DNA of 64,000 bases. Source: Salpingoeca rosetta. Its lineage: Eukaryota > Protista > Choanoflagellata. Location: assembly GCA_033442325.1 (NCBI GenBank), contig JAWQFM010000023.1, positions 876,410 to 940,409 of the forward strand, in the 5' to 3' direction. Both the position numbers and the translations under genes were made by a program. Below, piece after piece: positions 25,160 through 38,860 of this stretch. Positions within the stretch are counted from its first letter, which is position 1. Each line of letters begins with the position of its first letter. Below the pieces are notes generated by a model, which was given only the letters and a program-made list of their open reading frames with translations, searched no databases and was not told the DNA's origin.

Positions 25160-29234
<4,075 letters not shown>

Positions 29235-29510
29235 GCGAATGACAGACGCGACGATGATGATGTGGTGATGTGATGATGCGTCCACTGGTATGACTGACAG
29301 TGTATTTGTGTTCCGAGAAGAGGAAGGAGAAGGGCGGGAACATGATGGAAAGCATGGGAGGAAACAGAGATGAAGGAAAAAGTGCGCCGCACCAAAGGCG
29401 CAGCTGCCAATGGGAAAACATCGCAAGCAAACGCATCGTTACATCTCCGAGTGTCTTCGAATATGTGTGTGCGAATGTCTGTCGTTGTGAATGTTTGTGC
29501 GCGCTTGGGA

Positions 29511-29998
29511 TTAGGCGGAGGCGACGAAGGAGGTGGCAGCGTTAATGATGCGTTGTGCCGTCTGGGAGTTTTGAGCGCAACATCGACATGCAGGATAGAG
29601 AGAAGCAGTCGTGCGTTTGTGTGTTCGTTAGCACAGGTGGTGTTGGGTTGCTGTACATATGGCTGGTTATTTTGTACCGACCAACTTGGTTGTGTCACGT
29701 TACACGCGTGCGCTTGCGCGCACATCAGCGCACAATAAACGAAGCTTGCAAAGCGACACAACACGCCATCACCCTGCCACCACTCCTCACAACGAACAGC
29801 AAGAAGAACCAAGAGACTCCAGTGCGCCTGGTGCATTGATAAACACTCACGGCTGTGTCTGGAGCGAGGCCTGGGCCAACCAGCATATCCGCTGTTGCGT
29901 CGACCAGGAACGATGGGTCCTCGTAACCTGACAACATATATGTGTGTGTGTTGGGTGTGGATGGGTGAGCGTGTGTGTTGTGTGTGTGTATGTGCGTG

Positions 29999-30085
<87 letters not shown>

Positions 30086-32654
30086 AAGTGAGTGAGAGAC
30101 AGAGAGACAGAGAGAGAGAGAGATTGTGTGTAAGTGAGTGCGGGTGGGAGAGAGACAGAGAGATGTTGGGGCATCAAGATAAACACACCAAGGAAAGAGC
30201 TCAAGTACAAGCACTGCACACAAGACAAGCGTGAGGACCCAAACACAGTGAAGCGCACACGATAGCAAGCGTACCCTGCTGCTTCAATGGGTTGGCAAAC
30301 TCGGCCAGCCCCTGCAGAGACAGGCAGGCGATGAGCTGTCGCAGGCCATCGTCCGTCGGTTGCGGTGCGAGACTGCCAAGCAGTCCCATCGCATTCTGCA
30401 GCAGCGCTTCCTCTGCCGCGCAATTTGAAAACCGCGAGTGGAATAGCAAGCAAGAGAGCGAGCGCATACGGGAGTGTGAATGGTGCATCCTCAAGTCACC
30501 AGCACGTGCGTGTCCACGAATACACAAGCGCACAAGCGCACGCGGACAAACAAACAAACAAACACAAGCACACACAAGTACAAGCATGCGCACACACGAG
30601 CTACATCCACGCTCTGTACGCTCCACAATGTTCTCCACAAGCGCACCTTTCTTCGGCAGCGCTGCGTATGTGTCTGCTGGCATCTGTGCAACGGGCCGCG
30701 GTCCTCCATACGCTGGTGTCCGCTGCTCATCGACGTCCGTGTAGATCTAAACACATGTGACGAGATCATTCATGGGGTGCGGGACAATATGGAAGGGGTG
30801 AGGACATTGTGTTGTGTGTGTGTGTGTCTGTCTGTCTGTGTGTTGTGTGTGTCTGTGTGTGTGTCTGTCTGTGTGTGTGTGTGTCTGTGTCTGTGTGTGT
30901 CTGTGTGTGTGTCTGTGTTTGTGTGCATGCGTGCAATAAGTTTTGGCGTGCTTTGTCAACACAAAGTGATGACCGATACAACAACTGCAAATGGGTAAAA
31001 AACCAACATCGTCCTCAGGCGCGTGCATGTGTGCCGGCTGCTGCTGTGCCGTGGTTGCGGCTGATGTGCCCGCATATGGCGGAGGCAGCGGTGGCGGTGC
31101 GCGGGCTGCAGCGATCTGTGACTGCAAATTGTCCCCATCATCGTACAACAGGTCCTCCTGCTCTTGTGCCGCCTGACGATGGTGGTGGTGATGATTGTGG
31201 TGATGGCGGTGATGGCGGTGGTGAAGAGTGAGGAGCGTGTTGAGTTGGTCAAACATGGTGAACAAAGCATACAAAATTCGCAAGCACGCTGCATCCGATG
31301 CACTCACACAGACACGCACTGCCAAACCATCAATTCACGCCCAAACACAACCACATGCACACATAAAACGCACTGGCTGTGCGGGCTCTGCGTCGCATTC
31401 CGCGTAAATTGCTCCCTGATCCAAAATCGGCTCAGGCTGCTGCTGTTGCTGCTGCTGTTGTTGCTGCTGTTGTTGCTGCTGCTGTTGTTGCTGCTGTTGT
31501 TGCTGCTGCTGTGGCGCTTGGGGCTGCTGCTGTTGCTGCTGTCCCTCACTGCGAAGACGCAATCAGTTCCGCACAGTAACCAAAAGGGGTGTGCCCATGT
31601 GGTGTAAGACAACAGGGTGAATGCCAAGCGATAAATCTGCATACAAACGACACCAACGGTCACACACGGTCACACACGGTCACACACGGTCACACACGCA
31701 CACACGCACACGCAGCAGACACCAAACACATCATCAGCACCCCGGGCACCACGAGATTATGACTGACGTGTTCTGCGAGAATGCCTTGAGTTGTGCAGCC
31801 ATATCCTGCATGCTTATGGTGCCAGCCTTGACCTTCGCCATCAGACTCACGCGCAGCGTCTCAGGGACAGACGCAATCATCCCAGGTGTTATCTGCAAGC
31901 AGGGAGAGTGAGTGAGTGACTGTGTGACTGTGTGTCTGTGTGTCTGTATGTCTGTGTATGTGTGTCTGTGTCTGTGAACACTTTGATGTGCAGAAGTTCA
32001 ATCGGCGGCAACATGGTCACACAGCCACGGGTCGTTTGTTTGTGCGTGTGAGCTCCATCAAGGTGCGTGTCAACCCACCGAGCCCCCGCGTGCGCGATGT
32101 CCTTCTGGTGATTGGGCATCAGCCTGGTAACCGTGCAAGCAAAGCAAAGTGCATGTGAGTGCGCGTGAGCGTGAGGGAGATGTGACTGTGCATGTATGTG
32201 TCTGTGCGTGTATGTGTCTGTGTCTGTATGTGTGCGTGTATGTGTCTGTGCGTGTATGTGTCTGTGTCTGTATGTGTGTGAGGTTGTGTCTGTGTGTGAG
32301 GGTGTGTCTGTGTGAGGGAGTGCTATTTTGCAAATGTTTGCGGCGGCTGCTGCTCACCTGCTGTTGTGCACTGTCCTGTGCCGGCATTGGTGGGCGTGGC
32401 GGCAGCTCGGGCGCTGAATAATACACACACACACAAAAACACATACAAACATGGAAAAATGCATACACACGCACGATCAGGACCGTGGTCACATAGATTG
32501 GCATTGAGGCCATGAAGTGAGAACGTGTACAGTTGGGAAAGTTGACTTGATGTTCAACGGACAACACAATATGGCGCAGTCTATGCATGCTGTCGGAACG
32601 CACCCAGGTTTGGTGGTGGCAGGCCACGCTTCAGAGTGCCCGTTTTCTGTTGAG

Positions 32655-32693
<39 letters not shown>

Positions 32694-33397
32694 CGCACAC
32701 GAAGGCGGTTGGAAGTGACGGTGTCAACCCATGCAAATCAGGGGCAAGCAGTCATAGCAATGCAAAACAAAACCGCAGCATGAATTGGGACAGTACCCGC
32801 GAACACATGTATCCACGAACAAACACATGTATCCACGAACAAACACATGTATTCACGAACAAACACATGTATCCACGAACAAACACATGTATCCACGAAC
32901 AAACACATGTATCCAGCGTCACTCGGCAGCAGCACGAGAGGAGCAACGCACCGGTGCATCGCCAACGTTGAACGGGACAGCATAGATGTCGCCTTCAGGC
33001 TGCTGTTGTGGTGGCTGCTGCTGTGGTTTTGGCTGCTGTGGTCGCTGCGGCGGCTGTTGCTGCTGTTGTTGCGCCATCGGTGACGGCCGCGGTGGCGCAG
33101 CAGAGGACACGGCAGACTCGTCCACCTTCCCGTAGAAGGCAGCATCTTCCTGTGGCTGTGGCTGCTGTGGCTGTTGTTGCTGCTGTTGTTGCTGTTGTGG
33201 TGGCTGTTGTGGTGGCTGCTGTTGTGGTCGAAACGCCTGATCAACCAGCGACGCTGGCGCCTCCCCCTGAACACACACGCGCATGCAACGAGGACCGAAG
33301 AACGAAGGATGGATACACGTGAGAATCAGCATACAATGTGATCAACATACCTGGGACAATAAATACAAGCATGTGTGTGCTTGTCTGTGTGTATGCT

Positions 33398-33447
<50 letters not shown>

Positions 33448-33700
33448 CGTCGTCATGCGCCCTGTCTGCATGTGCATGTGCAAACAATCACTTCCGCTCC
33501 CCCCCCCGCTCCCCTCCACCTGGCGGTGGTGGTGGTGCGAATGGTGTACCAGCGCGGAGAGCTCGACGATGAGGGTGCCGAGGAGCTGGGCCTTGAGCGC
33601 CTGGGGAAGATGACTCGCCGCAATCTGCAGCGAGGGACGTGACGCGTGTTGAGCGGTGGGCACATAAGGCCACAAGTGCAGGTACAAGTACAGCAGGCAG

Positions 33701-33753
<53 letters not shown>

Positions 33754-34177
33754 TACACAAACACAAACAAACAAACAAACAAACAAACAAACAAACAAAC
33801 AAACAAACAAACAAACAAACAAACAAACAAACAAACAAACAAACAAACAAACAAACAAACAAACAAACAAACACACAAACAAACAAACAAACAAACAAAC
33901 AACGCACGCACACCAACATGCTCGCCCGCGCACCTCGTTCATCTTCATGAGGAGCTCTTCGCGTGTCGGACGGGACTGCTGTGCACCTGCGAGCGGATTT
34001 GAAGTGTCAGCGGCAGATGCAGTAGTGGCTGCACCCCCCTCTTCCTGTCCCTCTTGTTCTTCTTCCTCTTCGTCTTCCTCGGCAACAGCCTCCAGAAGCG
34101 CCTTCTCTTTGCTCTCCTCCTCCGCTTGCTTCGTCGCTGTGTGCAGATGCACGAGGCATGGACGTGAGAGAACGTGT

Positions 34178-34233
<56 letters not shown>

Positions 34234-34645
34234 CGGGTGGATGGAGAACACGTCCACACACGACAAGTACATGCATGATGTAACATATAACATACAACAC
34301 GGCACACAACCCACACAACACAGCACAACACGCAGCACGCATTGCCAAACACAGCAGGTGCCGTACCAATCTCGAGCAGCTGTGTCTCCATCTGGGCAAC
34401 GGTGATTTCGCCAGCCCGCACCTTCATCATCAGCTCCGTTCGCTTCTCCTCGGGCACGCGCGCAATCGCAGTTGGATCAACTGCAACACACACACACACA
34501 CGCGCATGAATAATACATACAAACAGACATGCGCACATGTGCACACACATACACACACGGAGCACCATCGCGAGAAATAACGTGAGAAAGAGCGTGAGCG
34601 GTTTTGGGCGTCAACTTGTGCACACATCCGCGTGTGCGTGTGTGT

Positions 34646-34692
<47 letters not shown>

Positions 34693-34708
34693 TGTGTGTG
34701 TGTGCGTG

Positions 34709-34755
<47 letters not shown>

Positions 34756-35328
34756 ACTGCCAAGAGCTCTATACTGCACTTCGCAGGACCAGTGAAAGGC
34801 GTTCTTCCATCGCTGTAATGCCCTCGCTTTCCTATGGCTCCCTCTGTCGCAGATCCGCCCTACACCGATGGACACCTCATCCAGATTACAAGTTGACTGT
34901 ACGTATCTAGTGAAGTCGAGCAAGCGCGTAAAATGAGGACCGACGTGGCTGGTCAGGACGAACTATACACAAAAGTCTAGTACAGTATAAAAACGGTGAT
35001 ATCAGGGGTTCTCCTGTTGTAGCCGTGTCACTAGCTTGCTGTTGCTTTTTCGACGGCCCCTGCATGGTACTTCAGCTTGATTTCTACTGGTGTGGTGATA
35101 TTCTAGTTAGACTGTTGGTTGATTACACCTGTGGAACAGGTCCTAATGTGTTAGGGTAGCATGCATCTACATAATCAAGAGCACGGTCTGGGGGTCGAGA
35201 ATAGTGTAGATAGCGAGAGATTGCTTGCTTACTCTTTGACCCCGGCCGAGCGTTGCTGCGTGCTCAGCAGTTGTAACGACGCTCTTAAGGATAAATAACA
35301 TTGGGGTTTGGACTCGACAGGTGAAACT

Positions 35329-35398
<70 letters not shown>

Positions 35399-37825
35399 AC
35401 GCAACTCCTCACCCGGTTGCCGCCGTCTCCTTGACGTTCTCGCGAATGCTGTCCATCGTCATCGCAGCCAGCGACCCGGCGCGCAGCTGGAATGAGTGTG
35501 TGTGTGTGTGGGTGGGTGTGGTTGGGTGTGGGTGGGTGTGGGTGGGTGTGGGTGGGTGTGGGTGGGTGTGGGTGGGTGTGGGTGGGTGTGGGTGGGTGGG
35601 TGTGTGGGTGGGTGTGTGGGGGGGTGTCAGAGAGAGGCGAACAAACAGGCATGGGAACAACCCGCGAAAGATGAAGGTGGGTAAGAAACCACAAACAGCA
35701 CGGGTGGGTCCAACCCCAACACACACGCGCACGCTCGCCGAGAACACAACAACCCAAACCCCACACCACGCCAACCATTGGTCATGCTCACCCTGGTCTG
35801 TCCCGTCACGTGCTGCACAATCTCCTTGATGTCCTCGTGCATGTCTTCGGGCGCAACGCCATACAGCGCCTGCTCGCCCGCTTGGGCCGTCGCGCCTGCC
35901 GCTGTTGGTGTTGCTGTTGGCGTTGCTGTTGGTGTTGCTGTTGGGTTTGCTGTTGGGTTTGCTGTTGGGTTTGCTGTTGGGTTTGCAGATGGAGCGCTTG
36001 CCGCATCAGCGGTGACGTTCGTGTACACTTCCTCGGGTGGGGCGAGGGGTGTGGTTGGTTGTGGCTGCTCTTGTGGCTGCGGGACGCGTGGTGGAAGTGA
36101 CGGCTTGGCCTCAGCCATGCTCGCTGCCATCTCTGGCGTGACATTGGTGTACACTTCCTCGGGTGGCGCAAGCGGCGTGGTCGGTTGTGCCGGCTGTTGC
36201 TGCTGCGGTGCGCGGGGTGGGAGCGACGGTGTGTCGGAAGCAGTCGCACCTGCCATCTCTGGCGTGATATTGGTGTACACTTCCTCGGGCGGTGCGAGAG
36301 GCGTTGTTGGTTGTGGCTGTTGCTGTGGCAGTGGCGCACGCGGTGGCAGGGACGGCGTTTGCTCGCCCTCGCTTCCAGATGCATGCTGTGCTGCGACGTC
36401 GCTGTTCTGGTAGATGTCCTCACCAGCCGGCAGCAGTGTTGGCTGCTGCTGCTGCTGCGGAACAGGGGCACGTGGGGGAAGCGATGGTGTTGATGCGGAT
36501 GTGGATGTGGATGTGGTGGCTGCTGCCATCTCTGGCGTGATGTTCGTGTAGACCTCTTCGGGTGGGGCGAGAGGGGTGGTGGGCTGGGGCTGTTGTTGCT
36601 GCGGCACGGGTGCGCGAGGAGGGAGGGATGGTGTTGCCTCTCCTCCTGTTGCTGCTGTTGCTGCTGCATCGCTGCCGACCACTTGCTTCACCACCTCTTC
36701 GTTCTGATACAGGTCCTCGTCTGGCGGCAGCAGCGTCGTGGGTGGCTGCTGCGGCTGCTGCTGGTGCACGGGGCCACGTGGGGCGAGTGGCGGCGTGGCA
36801 GCCGTGGTGTCCGCACCCAAGGTTGCCTTCACCACGTCATCGTTTTGATACACATCCTCGCCCGGCGGCAGCAGCGTCGTGGCAGCGGCAGTGGATGCTG
36901 CCGACGATGGGGTGGATGAAGCGAGCTTTGGCTTGCTTGTTGCACTTGGTGCAGCGGGGGCGATGTTGCCGTAGAGCTCGTGCTCGGGCACACCGTAGTC
37001 GACGGGCTGTGGCGGGACAGCCGCTGCCGGGTTTGGCTCGCGGGGCGGCAGAGACGGCGTTGTGGGCGCGGCAGTGGCAGCGGGTGTTGTTCTGACAGGC
37101 GGTGCTGCGGTTGGTGCAGAAATGGGTGGGGCCTTCGTGCTGATGGAGCTCTGGCGGCGTGGCGGCGCCTCTGCCGGCGGCTGCTCGAGCGTGGGTTTCT
37201 GCGGGTGCTCCACGTTCTGGTAGATGTCCTCGTCGGCACCCTGGAGTGGTGTGGACGGCGCCGGGCTGGCCAGGGGCACGGGCTCGCGCGGCAGGATGGG
37301 TGGAGAGGACTCTGTGAGCAGGAAGTCTGGTGGCGGCGGAAGTGCGCCTCCTTCACTGGTGGCTGCAGGTGGTGCGGGCTTGGCTGGCTTGCTTGGGGGC
37401 GGTGGCTGTGCCGGTGCATTGGGCTTGCTGGATGGCGGCGCTGGCTTTGCCGGCTTTGCCGGCTTTGCCGATGGCGGTGCGGGCTTTGCCGGCTTTGCCG
37501 CTGGCGGTGCGGGCTTTGCCGGCTTTGCCGCTGGCGGTGCGGGCTTTGCTGGCTTTGCTGGGGCGGGTGGCTTGGCTGCTGGGGCCGGCTTCGGTTTGGG
37601 CTTTGGCTGTGGCTGCCCTGTGGGTTTGGCTGGTGCGGGCGGAGGTGCTGGCTTGCTGGCTGGGGGCGCTGGGGGCGCTGGCTTTGGTGGTGGCGCAGCA
37701 GGTGGCGGCTTGCTTGCGCCTGGCTTGGGTGCAACTGGGGCTGGCTTGGATGCAGGCTTGGGGGCCACTGGCACAGGCTTTGCCGGCTTGCGCGCTGGCG
37801 GCGGTGGTCCTGGTCTGCTCGCCAT
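29511..37825 (-). CDS. Large Pro-rich tyrosine-motif docking/scaffold protein with C-terminal SAM domain
   Basis: Multi-exon model starting MASRPGPPPPARKP. Many acidic Y motifs and PSLPPR repeats. The last three exons splice in phase to LSLQGLAEFANPLKQQGYEDPSFLVDATADMLVGPGLAPDTATAQRIINAA (SAM pattern). Confidence 0.75.
32801..32915. repeat. Intronic 20-bp minisatellite (acatgtatccacgaacaaac), about 5.5 copies
   Basis: Seen directly; head-to-tail with no spacers. Confidence 0.92.
33765..33903. repeat. (AAAC)n microsatellite
   Basis: Seen directly. Confidence 0.95.
35508..35622. repeat. (GTGGGTGGGT)n G-rich intronic repeat with G-quadruplex potential
   Basis: Repeated GGG runs separated by 1-3 nt. 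Confidence 0.85.
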
Positions 37826-38860
37826 CTTGTGTGTGTGTGTCGTGTGTCTTGTGGTTTGTTTGCTGGTTTGTTTGTGCCAAGTTGGCTTGGCGCGGTGCTT
37901 GGATATGACAGGCCAGTTTTTTTTTTTTTTTTTGTTTGTTTTTTCTTTTGGTGTGTGCTCTGTGCTGTGTGGGGGGGGGCCGGAGGGGAGGGGGCTCTGC
38001 CTGTCTGCTTGCTGTCTTGCTGCTCCTGTGTTCGTCTTGTTTGGTGCCTCTACACCTGGCGTGATTTGTGCCTTTCGTCCTTCTTGTGACACGTTGTGTC
38101 TTGTGGATGCCTGGGGATGCTGGAGATGTGTCTGTGAAAGCAGGAAAGCGAAAGCACAATGCCCTAATGCCAGCATGTAAAAGAAGTGTGGATGTCTACA
38201 CTACACATAGTACAGAGTACACATGCTCCAACACACACTTCTCCTTGATGAATCATCATCAACTACATAGTCAGCCGTCAATGCTTGCTTCTTACAACCA
38301 TTTTCTTGTGATGGTGGCTCTGTTATTGCTTTCAGCCGCATGCCTTCGTGCTTTCGTGCTTTCGTGCAAGGGACCGATCCAACAAAAGAACAAAGACCAA
38401 GAGGAGAAGAGGAGAAGAGGATGAGCAACTCCACCCCCCTCCTGAGTGTGCACCAAGCAGGTTGTATGCTTTTCGGCCTTGCTTGGTCTTTGATGGTGGC
38501 TTGCTTTCTTTTCATCAGAACACGGACAAAGAACCAAGAGGCAAGTGCTCTGCAGTAAGCACCGAGTGCACGCAAGCAACGTACATCGTTGGTGAAAGAG
38601 AGTAACATAATGTAATGTAACAGAAAGACTCAATGACGAAGCAGCGACTGTCGACTGAAGGAAGAAGTGGAAACTTAACAGCGCAGGAGGAGGTGCATAC
38701 TCGATCCCAGCAATCACACCACGACCACAGTGGAAGCCAACAACCATGATCACACCACACTGGCGCGGAAGGGGGGGGGGAAGCACAGGCCGGCGCACAA
38801 GACCAGCACACAAGGCCAACGAGGAAAGCGGATGGGATGGCAGCTGTGCACTGGAGAAAC

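Follow-up and report, generated by a model that had tools for sequence, protein, structure and literature searches.

To our knowledge, surveys of premetazoan phosphotyrosine signalling have counted mainly domains (kinases, phosphatases, SH2 and PTB), so that docking proteins made solely of short motifs escape them and the targets of many choanoflagellate tyrosine kinases and SH2 proteins are thereby left open. Does a gene of the choanoflagellate Salpingoeca rosetta encode such a docking protein? The gene lies on the minus strand of a 64,000-nucleotide stretch of contig JAWQFM010000023.1 (GenBank assembly GCA_033442325.1, forward-strand positions 876,410 to 940,409), here called the window, to which all positions below refer. 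Its product carries repeated Y-x-N tyrosine motifs beside motifs of proline and arginine (Pro-Arg motifs). We found that its exons form a single expressed gene belonging to a choanoflagellate family that has no name and is entered in databases solely as "uncharacterized", and that the two kinds of motif are set in pairs. We consider it somewhat more probable than the contrary that the product is a lineage-specific, cytoplasmic, mostly disordered multisite phosphotyrosine docking scaffold.

The whole coding region occupies positions 29511-37825, from an ATG at 37825 to a TAA at 29513-29511. The start (MASRPG) is contained in an open reading frame of 849 codons (35627-38176, minus strand), and a consensus donor, AGG/GTGAGC, ends exon 1 in phase 0 after codon 678 at 35792. 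A preliminary description of this locus had placed exon 1 at about 35790-37240; its location and motifs hold good, although the exon in fact extends over 35792-37825. An initial model of 14 exons had GT..AG borders everywhere but broke the frame twice. The first break was resolved by exon 2b, recovered from RNA sequencing (RNA-seq), and the second by exon 6b (32604-32646), recovered from an environmental orthologue (P0032). Both had been overlooked, and with them the coding sequence runs in continuous frame with one stop. The gene thus has 16 exons, not 14, and a spliced coding sequence of 3,831 nt (1,276 aa); 15 of the exons are in the window, from which the 86-nt exon 2b is absent.

Transcription of the region 33874-35855 was followed in two raw RNA runs and in transcript contigs from two further runs. 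Strand-specific RNA depth was 30-45x over exons 3 and 4 and the end of exon 1, and the canonical joint between exons 3 and 4 (34136/34367) was present. The loose read end at 35792 consisted of the first 30 nt of exon 2 (22 and 13 reads, plus contigs of the two further runs); similarly, the loose read end at 33934 consisted of the first 30 nt of exon 5, giving the junction of exons 4 and 5. A transcript contig contained 156 letters between 35792 and 34484, 74 of which are exon 2. The remaining letters, together with four shared with the acceptor, make up exon 2b, and with it exon 3 is again entered in phase 1. Nowhere does the 64-kb window contain the final 30 nt of exon 2b; the orthologue of this exon lies between those of exons 2 and 3 in a related genomic contig (L002), which holds orthologues of exons 2, 2b, 3-8 and 10-14, in order. 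The 43-nt exon 6b was located because P0032 reads ...GTLKRGLPP...APELPPRP at the corresponding place. Reads cover the upstream junctions, and those from exon 5 onward are supported by GT..AG borders, frame closure and orthologue colinearity. The RNA-type runs contain a share of 0.39-0.40 of the words sampled from the locus, which is possible only if the 2-kb exon 1 is transcribed, so exon 1 belongs to the transcripts. All exons are therefore parts of one spliced, expressed gene, on the strength of the RNA-seq junctions and of colinearity with P0032, L002 and the proteins of Monosiga brevicollis and Choanoeca flexa. The single chain proposed in the preliminary description is borne out, and the contrary case that it had named, exons belonging to separate genes, did not come true.

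Exon 1 contains exactly nine Y-x-N motifs, at residues 202 (EDIYQN; Tyr codon starting at 37222), 285 (ELYGN; 36973), 326 (EDVYQN; 36850), 373 (EDLYQN; 36709), 426 (EEVYTN; 36550), 472 (EDIYQN; 36412), 517 (EEVYTN; 36277), 559 (EEVYTN; 36151) and 601 (EEVYTN; 36025). It also contains exactly six copies of PSLPPR, at residues 257, 399, 447, 491, 533 and 575, and two degenerate Pro-Arg copies that the preliminary description had not counted, PPILPR (175) and PPLAPR (345). In 20,000 shuffles of residues 171-678, the mean was 0.30 Y-x-N (maximum 4) and 0.49 P-x-x-P-x-R (maximum 5), and none of the 20,000 reached either the nine Y-x-N or the six P-x-x-P-x-R observed, so the counts first reported are exact and far from chance. 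Ten of the eleven tyrosines of exon 1 fall within a Y-x-N or YGVP motif.

The two motif types had been described as interleaved. Both are indeed present and repeated, but they are arranged rather as pairs at fixed spacing: eight of the nine Y-x-N tyrosines sit 20-23 residues past the Arg of a P-x-[LIV]-x-P-R motif, the degenerate copies included, and Y326 is the only Y-x-N in the array without a Pro-Arg partner. Counted from the other side, eight of nine P-x-[LIVA]-x-P-R motifs in the protein are followed by Y-x-N at +20 to +23. An alignment of seven units gave three invariant or near-invariant blocks, P-S-L-P-P-R-x-P, T-T-x-L-x-P and E-[ED]-[ILV]-Y-x-N. The acidic-aliphatic setting claimed for the tyrosines holds for nearly all of them (14 of the 20 tyrosines have an aliphatic residue at -1, where 2.8 would be expected), and such contexts exceeded every shuffle in S. 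rosetta, Monosiga and Choanoeca alike. The class II pattern assigned to the Pro-Arg motifs, P-x-x-P-x-R, fits the six PSLPPR and a PELPPR of S. rosetta. It does not extend to the family-wide pattern, which is P-x-x-x-P-R with Pro at -1 of Arg, as in PPILPR and PPLAPR.

A tandem array with a 126-nt period, and a copy number that varies among species, might be expected if the motif pattern were the functionless by-product of a recent tandem duplication of a low-complexity segment. This explanation is largely refuted and we give it hardly any credence. The copies are only 75-80% identical in DNA, the gene is expressed, and the same motif pair is found in orthologues that have no array. In the conserved columns (P, L, R, E, Y and N) the same residue is written with two to four synonymous codons, and the spacers of 12-15 residues are unconserved. 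Motif residues kept through different synonymous codons between diverged spacers indicate that the repeats are old and that the motifs are under purifying selection.

The relatives of the protein were reached through its three short helical hairpins, of which units 1 (exon 3) and 3 (exon 8) are 46% identical. A profile built from two hairpin copies (37 residues) and searched against 1.84 billion representative proteins matched a Choanoeca flexa protein (EukProt EP00730_P001712, 933 aa) at 5e-21, a Monosiga brevicollis protein (MONBRDRAFT_33923, UniProt A9V8H9, 904 aa, "uncharacterized") at 8e-8 and several environmental and Logan fragments at up to 5e-13. BLASTP on the hairpin gave 48-54% identity over 46 residues, and the S. 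rosetta protein conforms to the hairpin consensus I-A-x-V-P-E-x-x-R-x-x-L-M-x-K-V-x-x-G-x-I/L-T/S-x-x-x-M. P0032 is colinear with residues 780-1120 (E = 1e-46), and with the full-length proteins of Monosiga and Choanoeca the colinearity extends from the N-terminus as far as the C-terminal helix. The homologue search called for in the preliminary description thus returned relatives in two further genera and in environmental data.

The choanoflagellate members share, in the same order, a K/P-rich basic N-terminus, Y-x-N, an SLAASLAT helix, the hairpins, LYGV, (E/G)DIY-x-x-P/T, L(L/I)YDDG/V, P-x-P-Y, E-Y-x-x-L-P and a C-terminal amphipathic helix. The helix block reads SLAASLAT..R.Q in Monosiga and Choanoeca and is also kept in L002. 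LIYDDG/V occurs in Monosiga, the environmental relatives and Choanoeca; P-x-P-Y occurs in Monosiga and the environmental relatives and was not seen in Choanoeca. The counterparts of Y-A-A-L-P are EYAALP in Monosiga, EYSVLP in Choanoeca, AYAALP in a further relative (L003) and LYASLP in L002. Y-x-N is enriched over shuffles of the whole protein in S. rosetta (9 against 0.41) and in the other two full-length members (4 against 0.37, p ~2e-4, and 4 against 0.70, p ~3e-3). In Monosiga and Choanoeca together, all four P-x-[LIVA]-x-P-R motifs (PPLMPR, PPVLPR, PSLLPR and PALAPR, which fit P-x-x-x-P-R) have a Y-x-N as their next tyrosine, at +18, +9, +9 and +34, so that the pairing is a trait of the family. 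Monosiga and Choanoeca differ from S. rosetta in being shorter, in having two Pro-Arg/Y-x-N pairs each instead of eight, in carrying lysine runs where S. rosetta is acidic and in lacking its SAM-like end. To judge from the sequences compared, pairing is family-wide and the eight-fold amplification of the module is specific to the S. rosetta lineage. The suggestion of an undescribed pre-animal phosphotyrosine hub survives in its first part, the family being uncharacterised; since the family was found only in choanoflagellates, it looks lineage-specific and not like an ancestral pre-animal hub.

Some observations on the hairpin and its surroundings stand apart. The hairpin profile also matched proteins outside the family. 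In a JGI metagenome protein of 796 aa (P0022), two copies of the unit stand between a PTEN-type phosphatase/C2 domain and a CAP-Gly domain, and in vertebrate epiplakin and plectin (P0001, P0004, P0024) the unit resembles, in a helix-Gly-helix pattern, the conserved segment IPEEKRQELLELYRAGILT... that follows each plakin-repeat domain. A WH2 motif was rejected for the hairpin (it has no LKKV part and its Gly spacing is different), as were an EF-hand and SHOCT, for which there was a likeness of pattern and no profile match. In a marine relative (Tara scaffolds L005-L010), the region of exons 6-8 is one uninterrupted open reading frame of 180 codons, so the intron density of the gene differs strongly among choanoflagellate lineages.

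Domain searches gave little. Pfam detected no domain in nine exon translations or in the full-length orthologues, and Rfam had no match over 29300-38300. Word-based protein searches with exon 1 and with its non-repetitive end returned no match, not even the gene's own product, which was also missing from the matches of the exhaustive hairpin profile search; the product is probably absent from public protein sets or mis-modelled in them. Low-complexity words dominated a word search with the Monosiga and Choanoeca alignment, and a literature search turned up no paper that mentions the Monosiga accession. The ESM Atlas gave no usable feature match for the repeat region, exon 12 or the Monosiga middle region, and its structure matches reached a TM-score of at most 0.26. 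In an AlphaFold model of the Choanoeca orthologue, computed from the family alignment, 614 of the 933 residues had a predicted confidence (pLDDT) below 50, whereas the three hairpins were at 94-98 and the helical SLAA block and the C-terminal two helices at 70-87. An exhaustive fold comparison with this model retrieved generic helical hairpins only (Z ≤ 6.2), so no fold is assigned. About 80% of the S. rosetta protein is low-complexity sequence with no domain match. The protein is thus predicted to be a long disordered chain that bears short linear motifs and, here and there, a small helical module.

The remaining features named in the preliminary description are likewise present in the spliced model. 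The N-terminal PAKP repeats fall in residues 1-165, a region with an isoelectric point of 11.6, 42% Pro and 27 K/R against one D/E; YGVP (Y277), YAVP (Y957), PPPY (1130-1133) and DIYTDV (1155-1160) were all recovered. No transmembrane segment was seen (the highest Kyte-Doolittle mean over 19 residues is 1.35), and Pfam gave no kinase or SH2 domain in exons or orthologues, as the description had said. Cysteine is absent from exon 1 up to the splice site, and a polyglutamine tract of 36 residues accompanies exons rich in glutamine and proline. A secreted glycoprotein with N-x-T sequons was considered and rejected, as signal peptide and transmembrane segment are absent.

The SAM domain of the preliminary description fared less clearly. 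The segment is split over exons 12-14, all conserved in L002 at 53-64% identity, and its spliced sequence follows the SAM hydrophobic pattern when read by eye, but its exon pieces had no match in Pfam (E ≤ 1), in PDB sequence and profile searches (E ≤ 10) or in the Atlas. Two metagenome scans for an intron-free orthologous C-terminus returned no match either. From the pattern and the conservation in L002, we regard a SAM fold at the C-terminus as likely. It is not a feature of the family: Pfam SAM was not detected in the Monosiga and Choanoeca orthologues, which end right after the conserved C-terminal helix.

How, then, might such a protein work? Acidic residues at -2 to -4 with Ile, Val or Leu at -1 are a typical substrate context of tyrosine kinases, and phosphorylated Y-x-N (pYxN) is the consensus of the Grb2 SH2 domain. 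Four of the sites read YTNI, which is also the context of the Grb2-binding Tyr542 in human SHP2, and PSLPPR fits class II P-x-Phi-P-x-R in the way that the SOS1 motifs do. Homologues of Grb2 and Shp2 are reported from Salpingoeca and Monosiga (PMC7260276). In the docking-scaffold reading, choanoflagellate tyrosine kinases would phosphorylate the tyrosines of the array, the pYxN sites would recruit a Grb2-type SH2 domain and the neighbouring Pro-Arg motif would bind SH3, either on that adaptor or on another one. Every module would in this way make a two-part landing pad for SH3 and SH2, and a single chain could gather as many as eight adaptor molecules. The basic N-terminus could anchor the protein to the cytoskeleton or to acidic membranes, and the hairpins and the SAM-like end could mediate self-association or the binding of partners. 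Further motifs (LYGV, DIYA-x-P, LLYDDG, YAALP and PPxY) are kept in at least one orthologue. The fixed spacing suggests that each module may dock one protein with adjacent SH3 and SH2 domains; such docking would be of high avidity and would compete with the bridging between chains that a condensate requires.

Several observations weigh against the docking scaffold. Module number and spacing differ strongly among species (8, 2 and 2 modules; 21 against 9-34 residues). Homology beyond the hairpins consists of short colinear motifs, and a profile of Monosiga and Choanoeca scored 35.6 and 9.5 bits, both on the hairpins. PPLMPR, PPVLPR and PSLLPR, examples of the family-wide motif, place Pro at -1 of Arg and so depart from the class II site that is canonical for Grb2; the SH3 partner may therefore be another protein. 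No peptide of the protein was found in the searched supplements of an S. rosetta phosphoproteome (PMC11984502), where it may not have been searchable, as it is seemingly absent from public protein sets. Lastly, the polyglutamine tract, the lysine runs of the orthologues and the possible SAM domain would also suit a nuclear protein.

The same motifs might serve a phosphorylation-gated condensate hub, in which Grb2-like adaptors bridge pYxN and PSLPPR on different chains and phase separation is aided by SAM polymerisation. Both motif types do occur at high valency on one chain, the lineage has a Grb2 homologue, and LAT-Grb2-Sos1 and SLP65-CIN85 are established precedents for condensates driven by the multivalency of phosphotyrosine/SH2 and proline-rich motif/SH3 contacts (PMC6624021; doi 10.1101/2023.07.31.551239). 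Nevertheless, pairing at 20-23 residues speaks for bivalent docking in cis, with one SH3-SH2 protein per unit, no less than for cross-linking, and binding in cis by one adaptor would cap the valency. In addition, the SAM domain is unconfirmed, Pfam recognised none in the orthologues from Monosiga and Choanoeca, and with two pairs in each of these orthologues, high valency is not a trait of the family. We therefore think such a hub unlikely. The more specific proposal, that the protein is a convergent, single-chain choanoflagellate equivalent of LAT/SOS or SLP65/CIN85 whose eight bipartite Pro-Arg/pYxN modules would let a Grb2-like adaptor convert tyrosine-kinase activity into a membrane-proximal signalling cluster or condensate, and which surveys based on domains would not see, is to our mind just as doubtful.

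A proline-rich cytoskeletal or endocytic linker would not need tyrosine phosphorylation at all. Here the Pro-Arg, polyproline and PPxY motifs would recruit partners of SH3, WW or profilin type, the tyrosines would act in YxxPhi sorting or make hydrophobic contacts, and the basic N-terminus would have actin, microtubules or membranes as its targets. The basic N-terminus with its 42% proline suits this proposal, as do the conserved PPxY motif, the fit of YTNI, YTNV, YQNV and YGNI to YxxPhi as well, the position of the hairpin between PTEN-C2 and CAP-Gly in P0022 and its resemblance to the tail segment of plakin repeat domains. PxxxPR is moreover a motif for SH3 domains of CIN85/CD2AP type that SLP65 uses constitutively (PMC3181483). 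What the linker leaves unexplained is the strict Asn at +2 in nine sites, which recurs in orthologues, and the acidic -2/-3 and aliphatic -1 context of most tyrosines; besides, YxxPhi works on the tails of membrane cargo and this protein has no transmembrane segment. We judge a linker of this kind improbable, a shade more so than the condensate hub. Less probable still is a nuclear or chromatin-associated low-complexity protein, with activation-type polyglutamine and proline regions and a polymerising SAM domain acting in transcription and with incidental tyrosine motifs. The 36-residue polyglutamine tract, the glutamine/proline-rich exons and the SAM-like C-terminus would agree with it, and the lysine runs of the orthologues look like nuclear localisation signals. 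Pfam scans of exons and orthologues, however, found no DNA-binding or chromatin domain, and the polyglutamine tract and the SAM-like end are not common to Monosiga and Choanoeca, whereas the tyrosine and proline motifs are.

The docking scaffold proposed here can be compared with several known systems. As in LAT-Grb2-SOS1 of vertebrate T cells, the sequence offers several candidate pYxN sites for Grb2 SH2 binding together with multiple P-x-x-P-x-R motifs for SH3, a multivalency that leads there to clustering and condensates (PMC6624021). The two motif sets are, however, on two proteins in T cells and on one soluble chain at fixed spacing in S. rosetta; LAT is a palmitoylated transmembrane protein, and the S. 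rosetta protein has no transmembrane segment, RasGEF or sequence homology. Gab1/DOS and GAREM are large disordered docking proteins that bind Grb2 through pYxN (SH2) and proline-rich motifs (SH3), and GAREM ends in a SAM domain. Gab carries an N-terminal PH domain (PH or PTB in Gab, DOS and IRS), which Pfam did not find in exon 1 or the orthologues, and GAREM an N-terminal CABIT domain, which had no Pfam match in the S. rosetta exons or orthologues; these proteins have one or two Grb2 sites, compared with an eight-fold array.

A disordered array of repeated tyrosine motifs is likewise found in p130Cas (BCAR1), in which a bipartite site, a proline motif and a tyrosine about 20 residues apart, binds the SH3 and SH2 domains of Src jointly and is followed by helical bundles. 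Unlike the S. rosetta protein, p130Cas has an N-terminal SH3 domain, YxxP repeats and a single bipartite site, and there is no sequence homology. Neither the Cas SH3 nor the FAT-like domain had a Pfam match here, and the fold matches of the orthologue (Z ≤ 6.2) were generic hairpins. SLP65/BLNK with CIN85 combines PxxxPR motifs and phosphotyrosine docking sites on a disordered adaptor, with binding of the multi-SH3 protein CIN85 and condensates (PMC3181483; doi 10.1101/2023.07.31.551239). P-x-[LIV]-x-P-R, the consensus of the choanoflagellate family, conforms to this PxxxPR pattern. At position 3, the CIN85 motif prefers Pro or Ala, whereas the choanoflagellate family has Leu, Ile or Val. SLP65 further differs in its C-terminal SH2 domain and N-terminal lipid-binding region, and Pfam found no SH2 domain of SLP-76/BLNK type here. 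Likened in turn to LAT/SOS, Gab/GAREM, Cas and SLP65, the protein would seem an analogue of each: the defining domain of none of them was found in it, and it shares no sequence homology with them.

The gene thus offers a testable candidate that is expressed, is conserved in three choanoflagellate genera and belongs to a species amenable to genetics. Selection on its motifs is visible, and it is apparently absent from public protein sets and hence from the databases that proteomics searches use. If it truly is a substrate and adaptor platform, multivalent scaffolding through phosphotyrosine/SH2 and proline-rich motif/SH3 contacts would have had an origin separate from that of the LAT, Gab, Cas and SLP proteins of animals. 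Its features are located in Table 1.

Table 1 Exons and protein features of the S. rosetta gene, in window positions.
Feature	Position	Strand	Basis
Exon 1, 678 aa	35792..37825	minus	junction of exons 1 and 2 from RNA-seq
Polybasic Pro/Ala/Lys N-terminal region, residues 1-165, PAKP/KPAPP repeats	37331..37825	minus	composition
Eight Pro-Arg/Y-x-N modules, residues 175-603, plus unpartnered Y-x-N Y326	36017..37303	minus	motif positions, spacing
Exon 2 LRAGSLAAMTMDSIRENVKETAATG; with the end of exon 1, the conserved helical block	35413..35486	minus	RNA-seq, conservation
Interval expected to hold exon 2b; instead a unique 567-nt stretch	34481..35412	minus	transcript contigs
Exon 3, helical hairpin unit 1 VDPTAIARVPEEKRTELMMKVRAGEITVAQMETQLLEI	34367..34480	minus	RNA depth 30-45, joint 34136/34367
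Exon 4, acidic linker and first helix of hairpin unit 2 (REELLMKMNE)	33934..34136	minus	RNA depth and joints; colinear with P0032
Exon 5, second half of hairpin unit 2	33550..33624	minus	loose read end at 33934; P0032 reads across the junction
Exon 6, glutamine/proline-rich, conserved FYGKVDE and DIYAVPF tyrosines	32952..33266	minus	exon model, P0032
Exon 6b KTGTLKRGLPPPNL, closes the frame between exons 6 and 7	32604..32646	minus	P0032; borders acag and gtgcgt; 43 nt
Exon 7 APELPPRPPMPAQDSAQQQ, further P-x-x-P-x-R site kept in P0032 and L002	32358..32413	minus	exon model, orthologues
Exon 8, helical hairpin unit 3	31768..31892	minus	exon model, profile search
Exon 9, polyglutamine and conserved AIYAECD	31374..31548	minus	exon model, orthologues
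Exon 10, conserved LLYDDGD and PPPY (WW-ligand type)	31008..31172	minus	exon model, orthologues
Exon 11, DIYTDV and conserved Y-A-A-L-P	30647..30746	minus	exon model, orthologues
Exons 12-14, C-terminal helix EALLQNAMGLLGSL, SAM-like segment of ~70 residues, stop	30275-30412, 29851-29927, 29511-29561	minus	exon model; conserved in L002

At the place expected for exon 2b, the window has a unique stretch of 567 nt (34764-35330, 49% GC) flanked by (CA)n tracts; the stretch had no RNA coverage and no Rfam match. Intron-retaining reads depart from the window at 35719 for sequence that is absent from it, and some reads jump from 35738 to 34486 with 24 GT-rich letters in between. The mismatch between assembly and RNA at 34481-35791 suggests either that CA/GT microsatellites led the assembly astray or that the strains differ. 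At position 34323 in intron 3, all five pre-mRNA reads (three X20, two X21) have A where the window has G, probably a single-nucleotide polymorphism between strains. A microsatellite of CA/GT type is present in nearly every intron of the gene; intron 4 also contains a (GTTT)n tract of about 110 nt (33763-33873), and intron 6 has six tandem copies of the 20-nt unit GGATACATGTGTTTGTTCGT (32800-32915). The convergent neighbour at 28662-29234 on the plus strand encodes a FYVE-type zinc finger (…CPFCKSEFSFFFRKHHCRQCGKV). The same FYVE neighbour follows the orthologous gene on L002 in the same orientation, so that local synteny is conserved.

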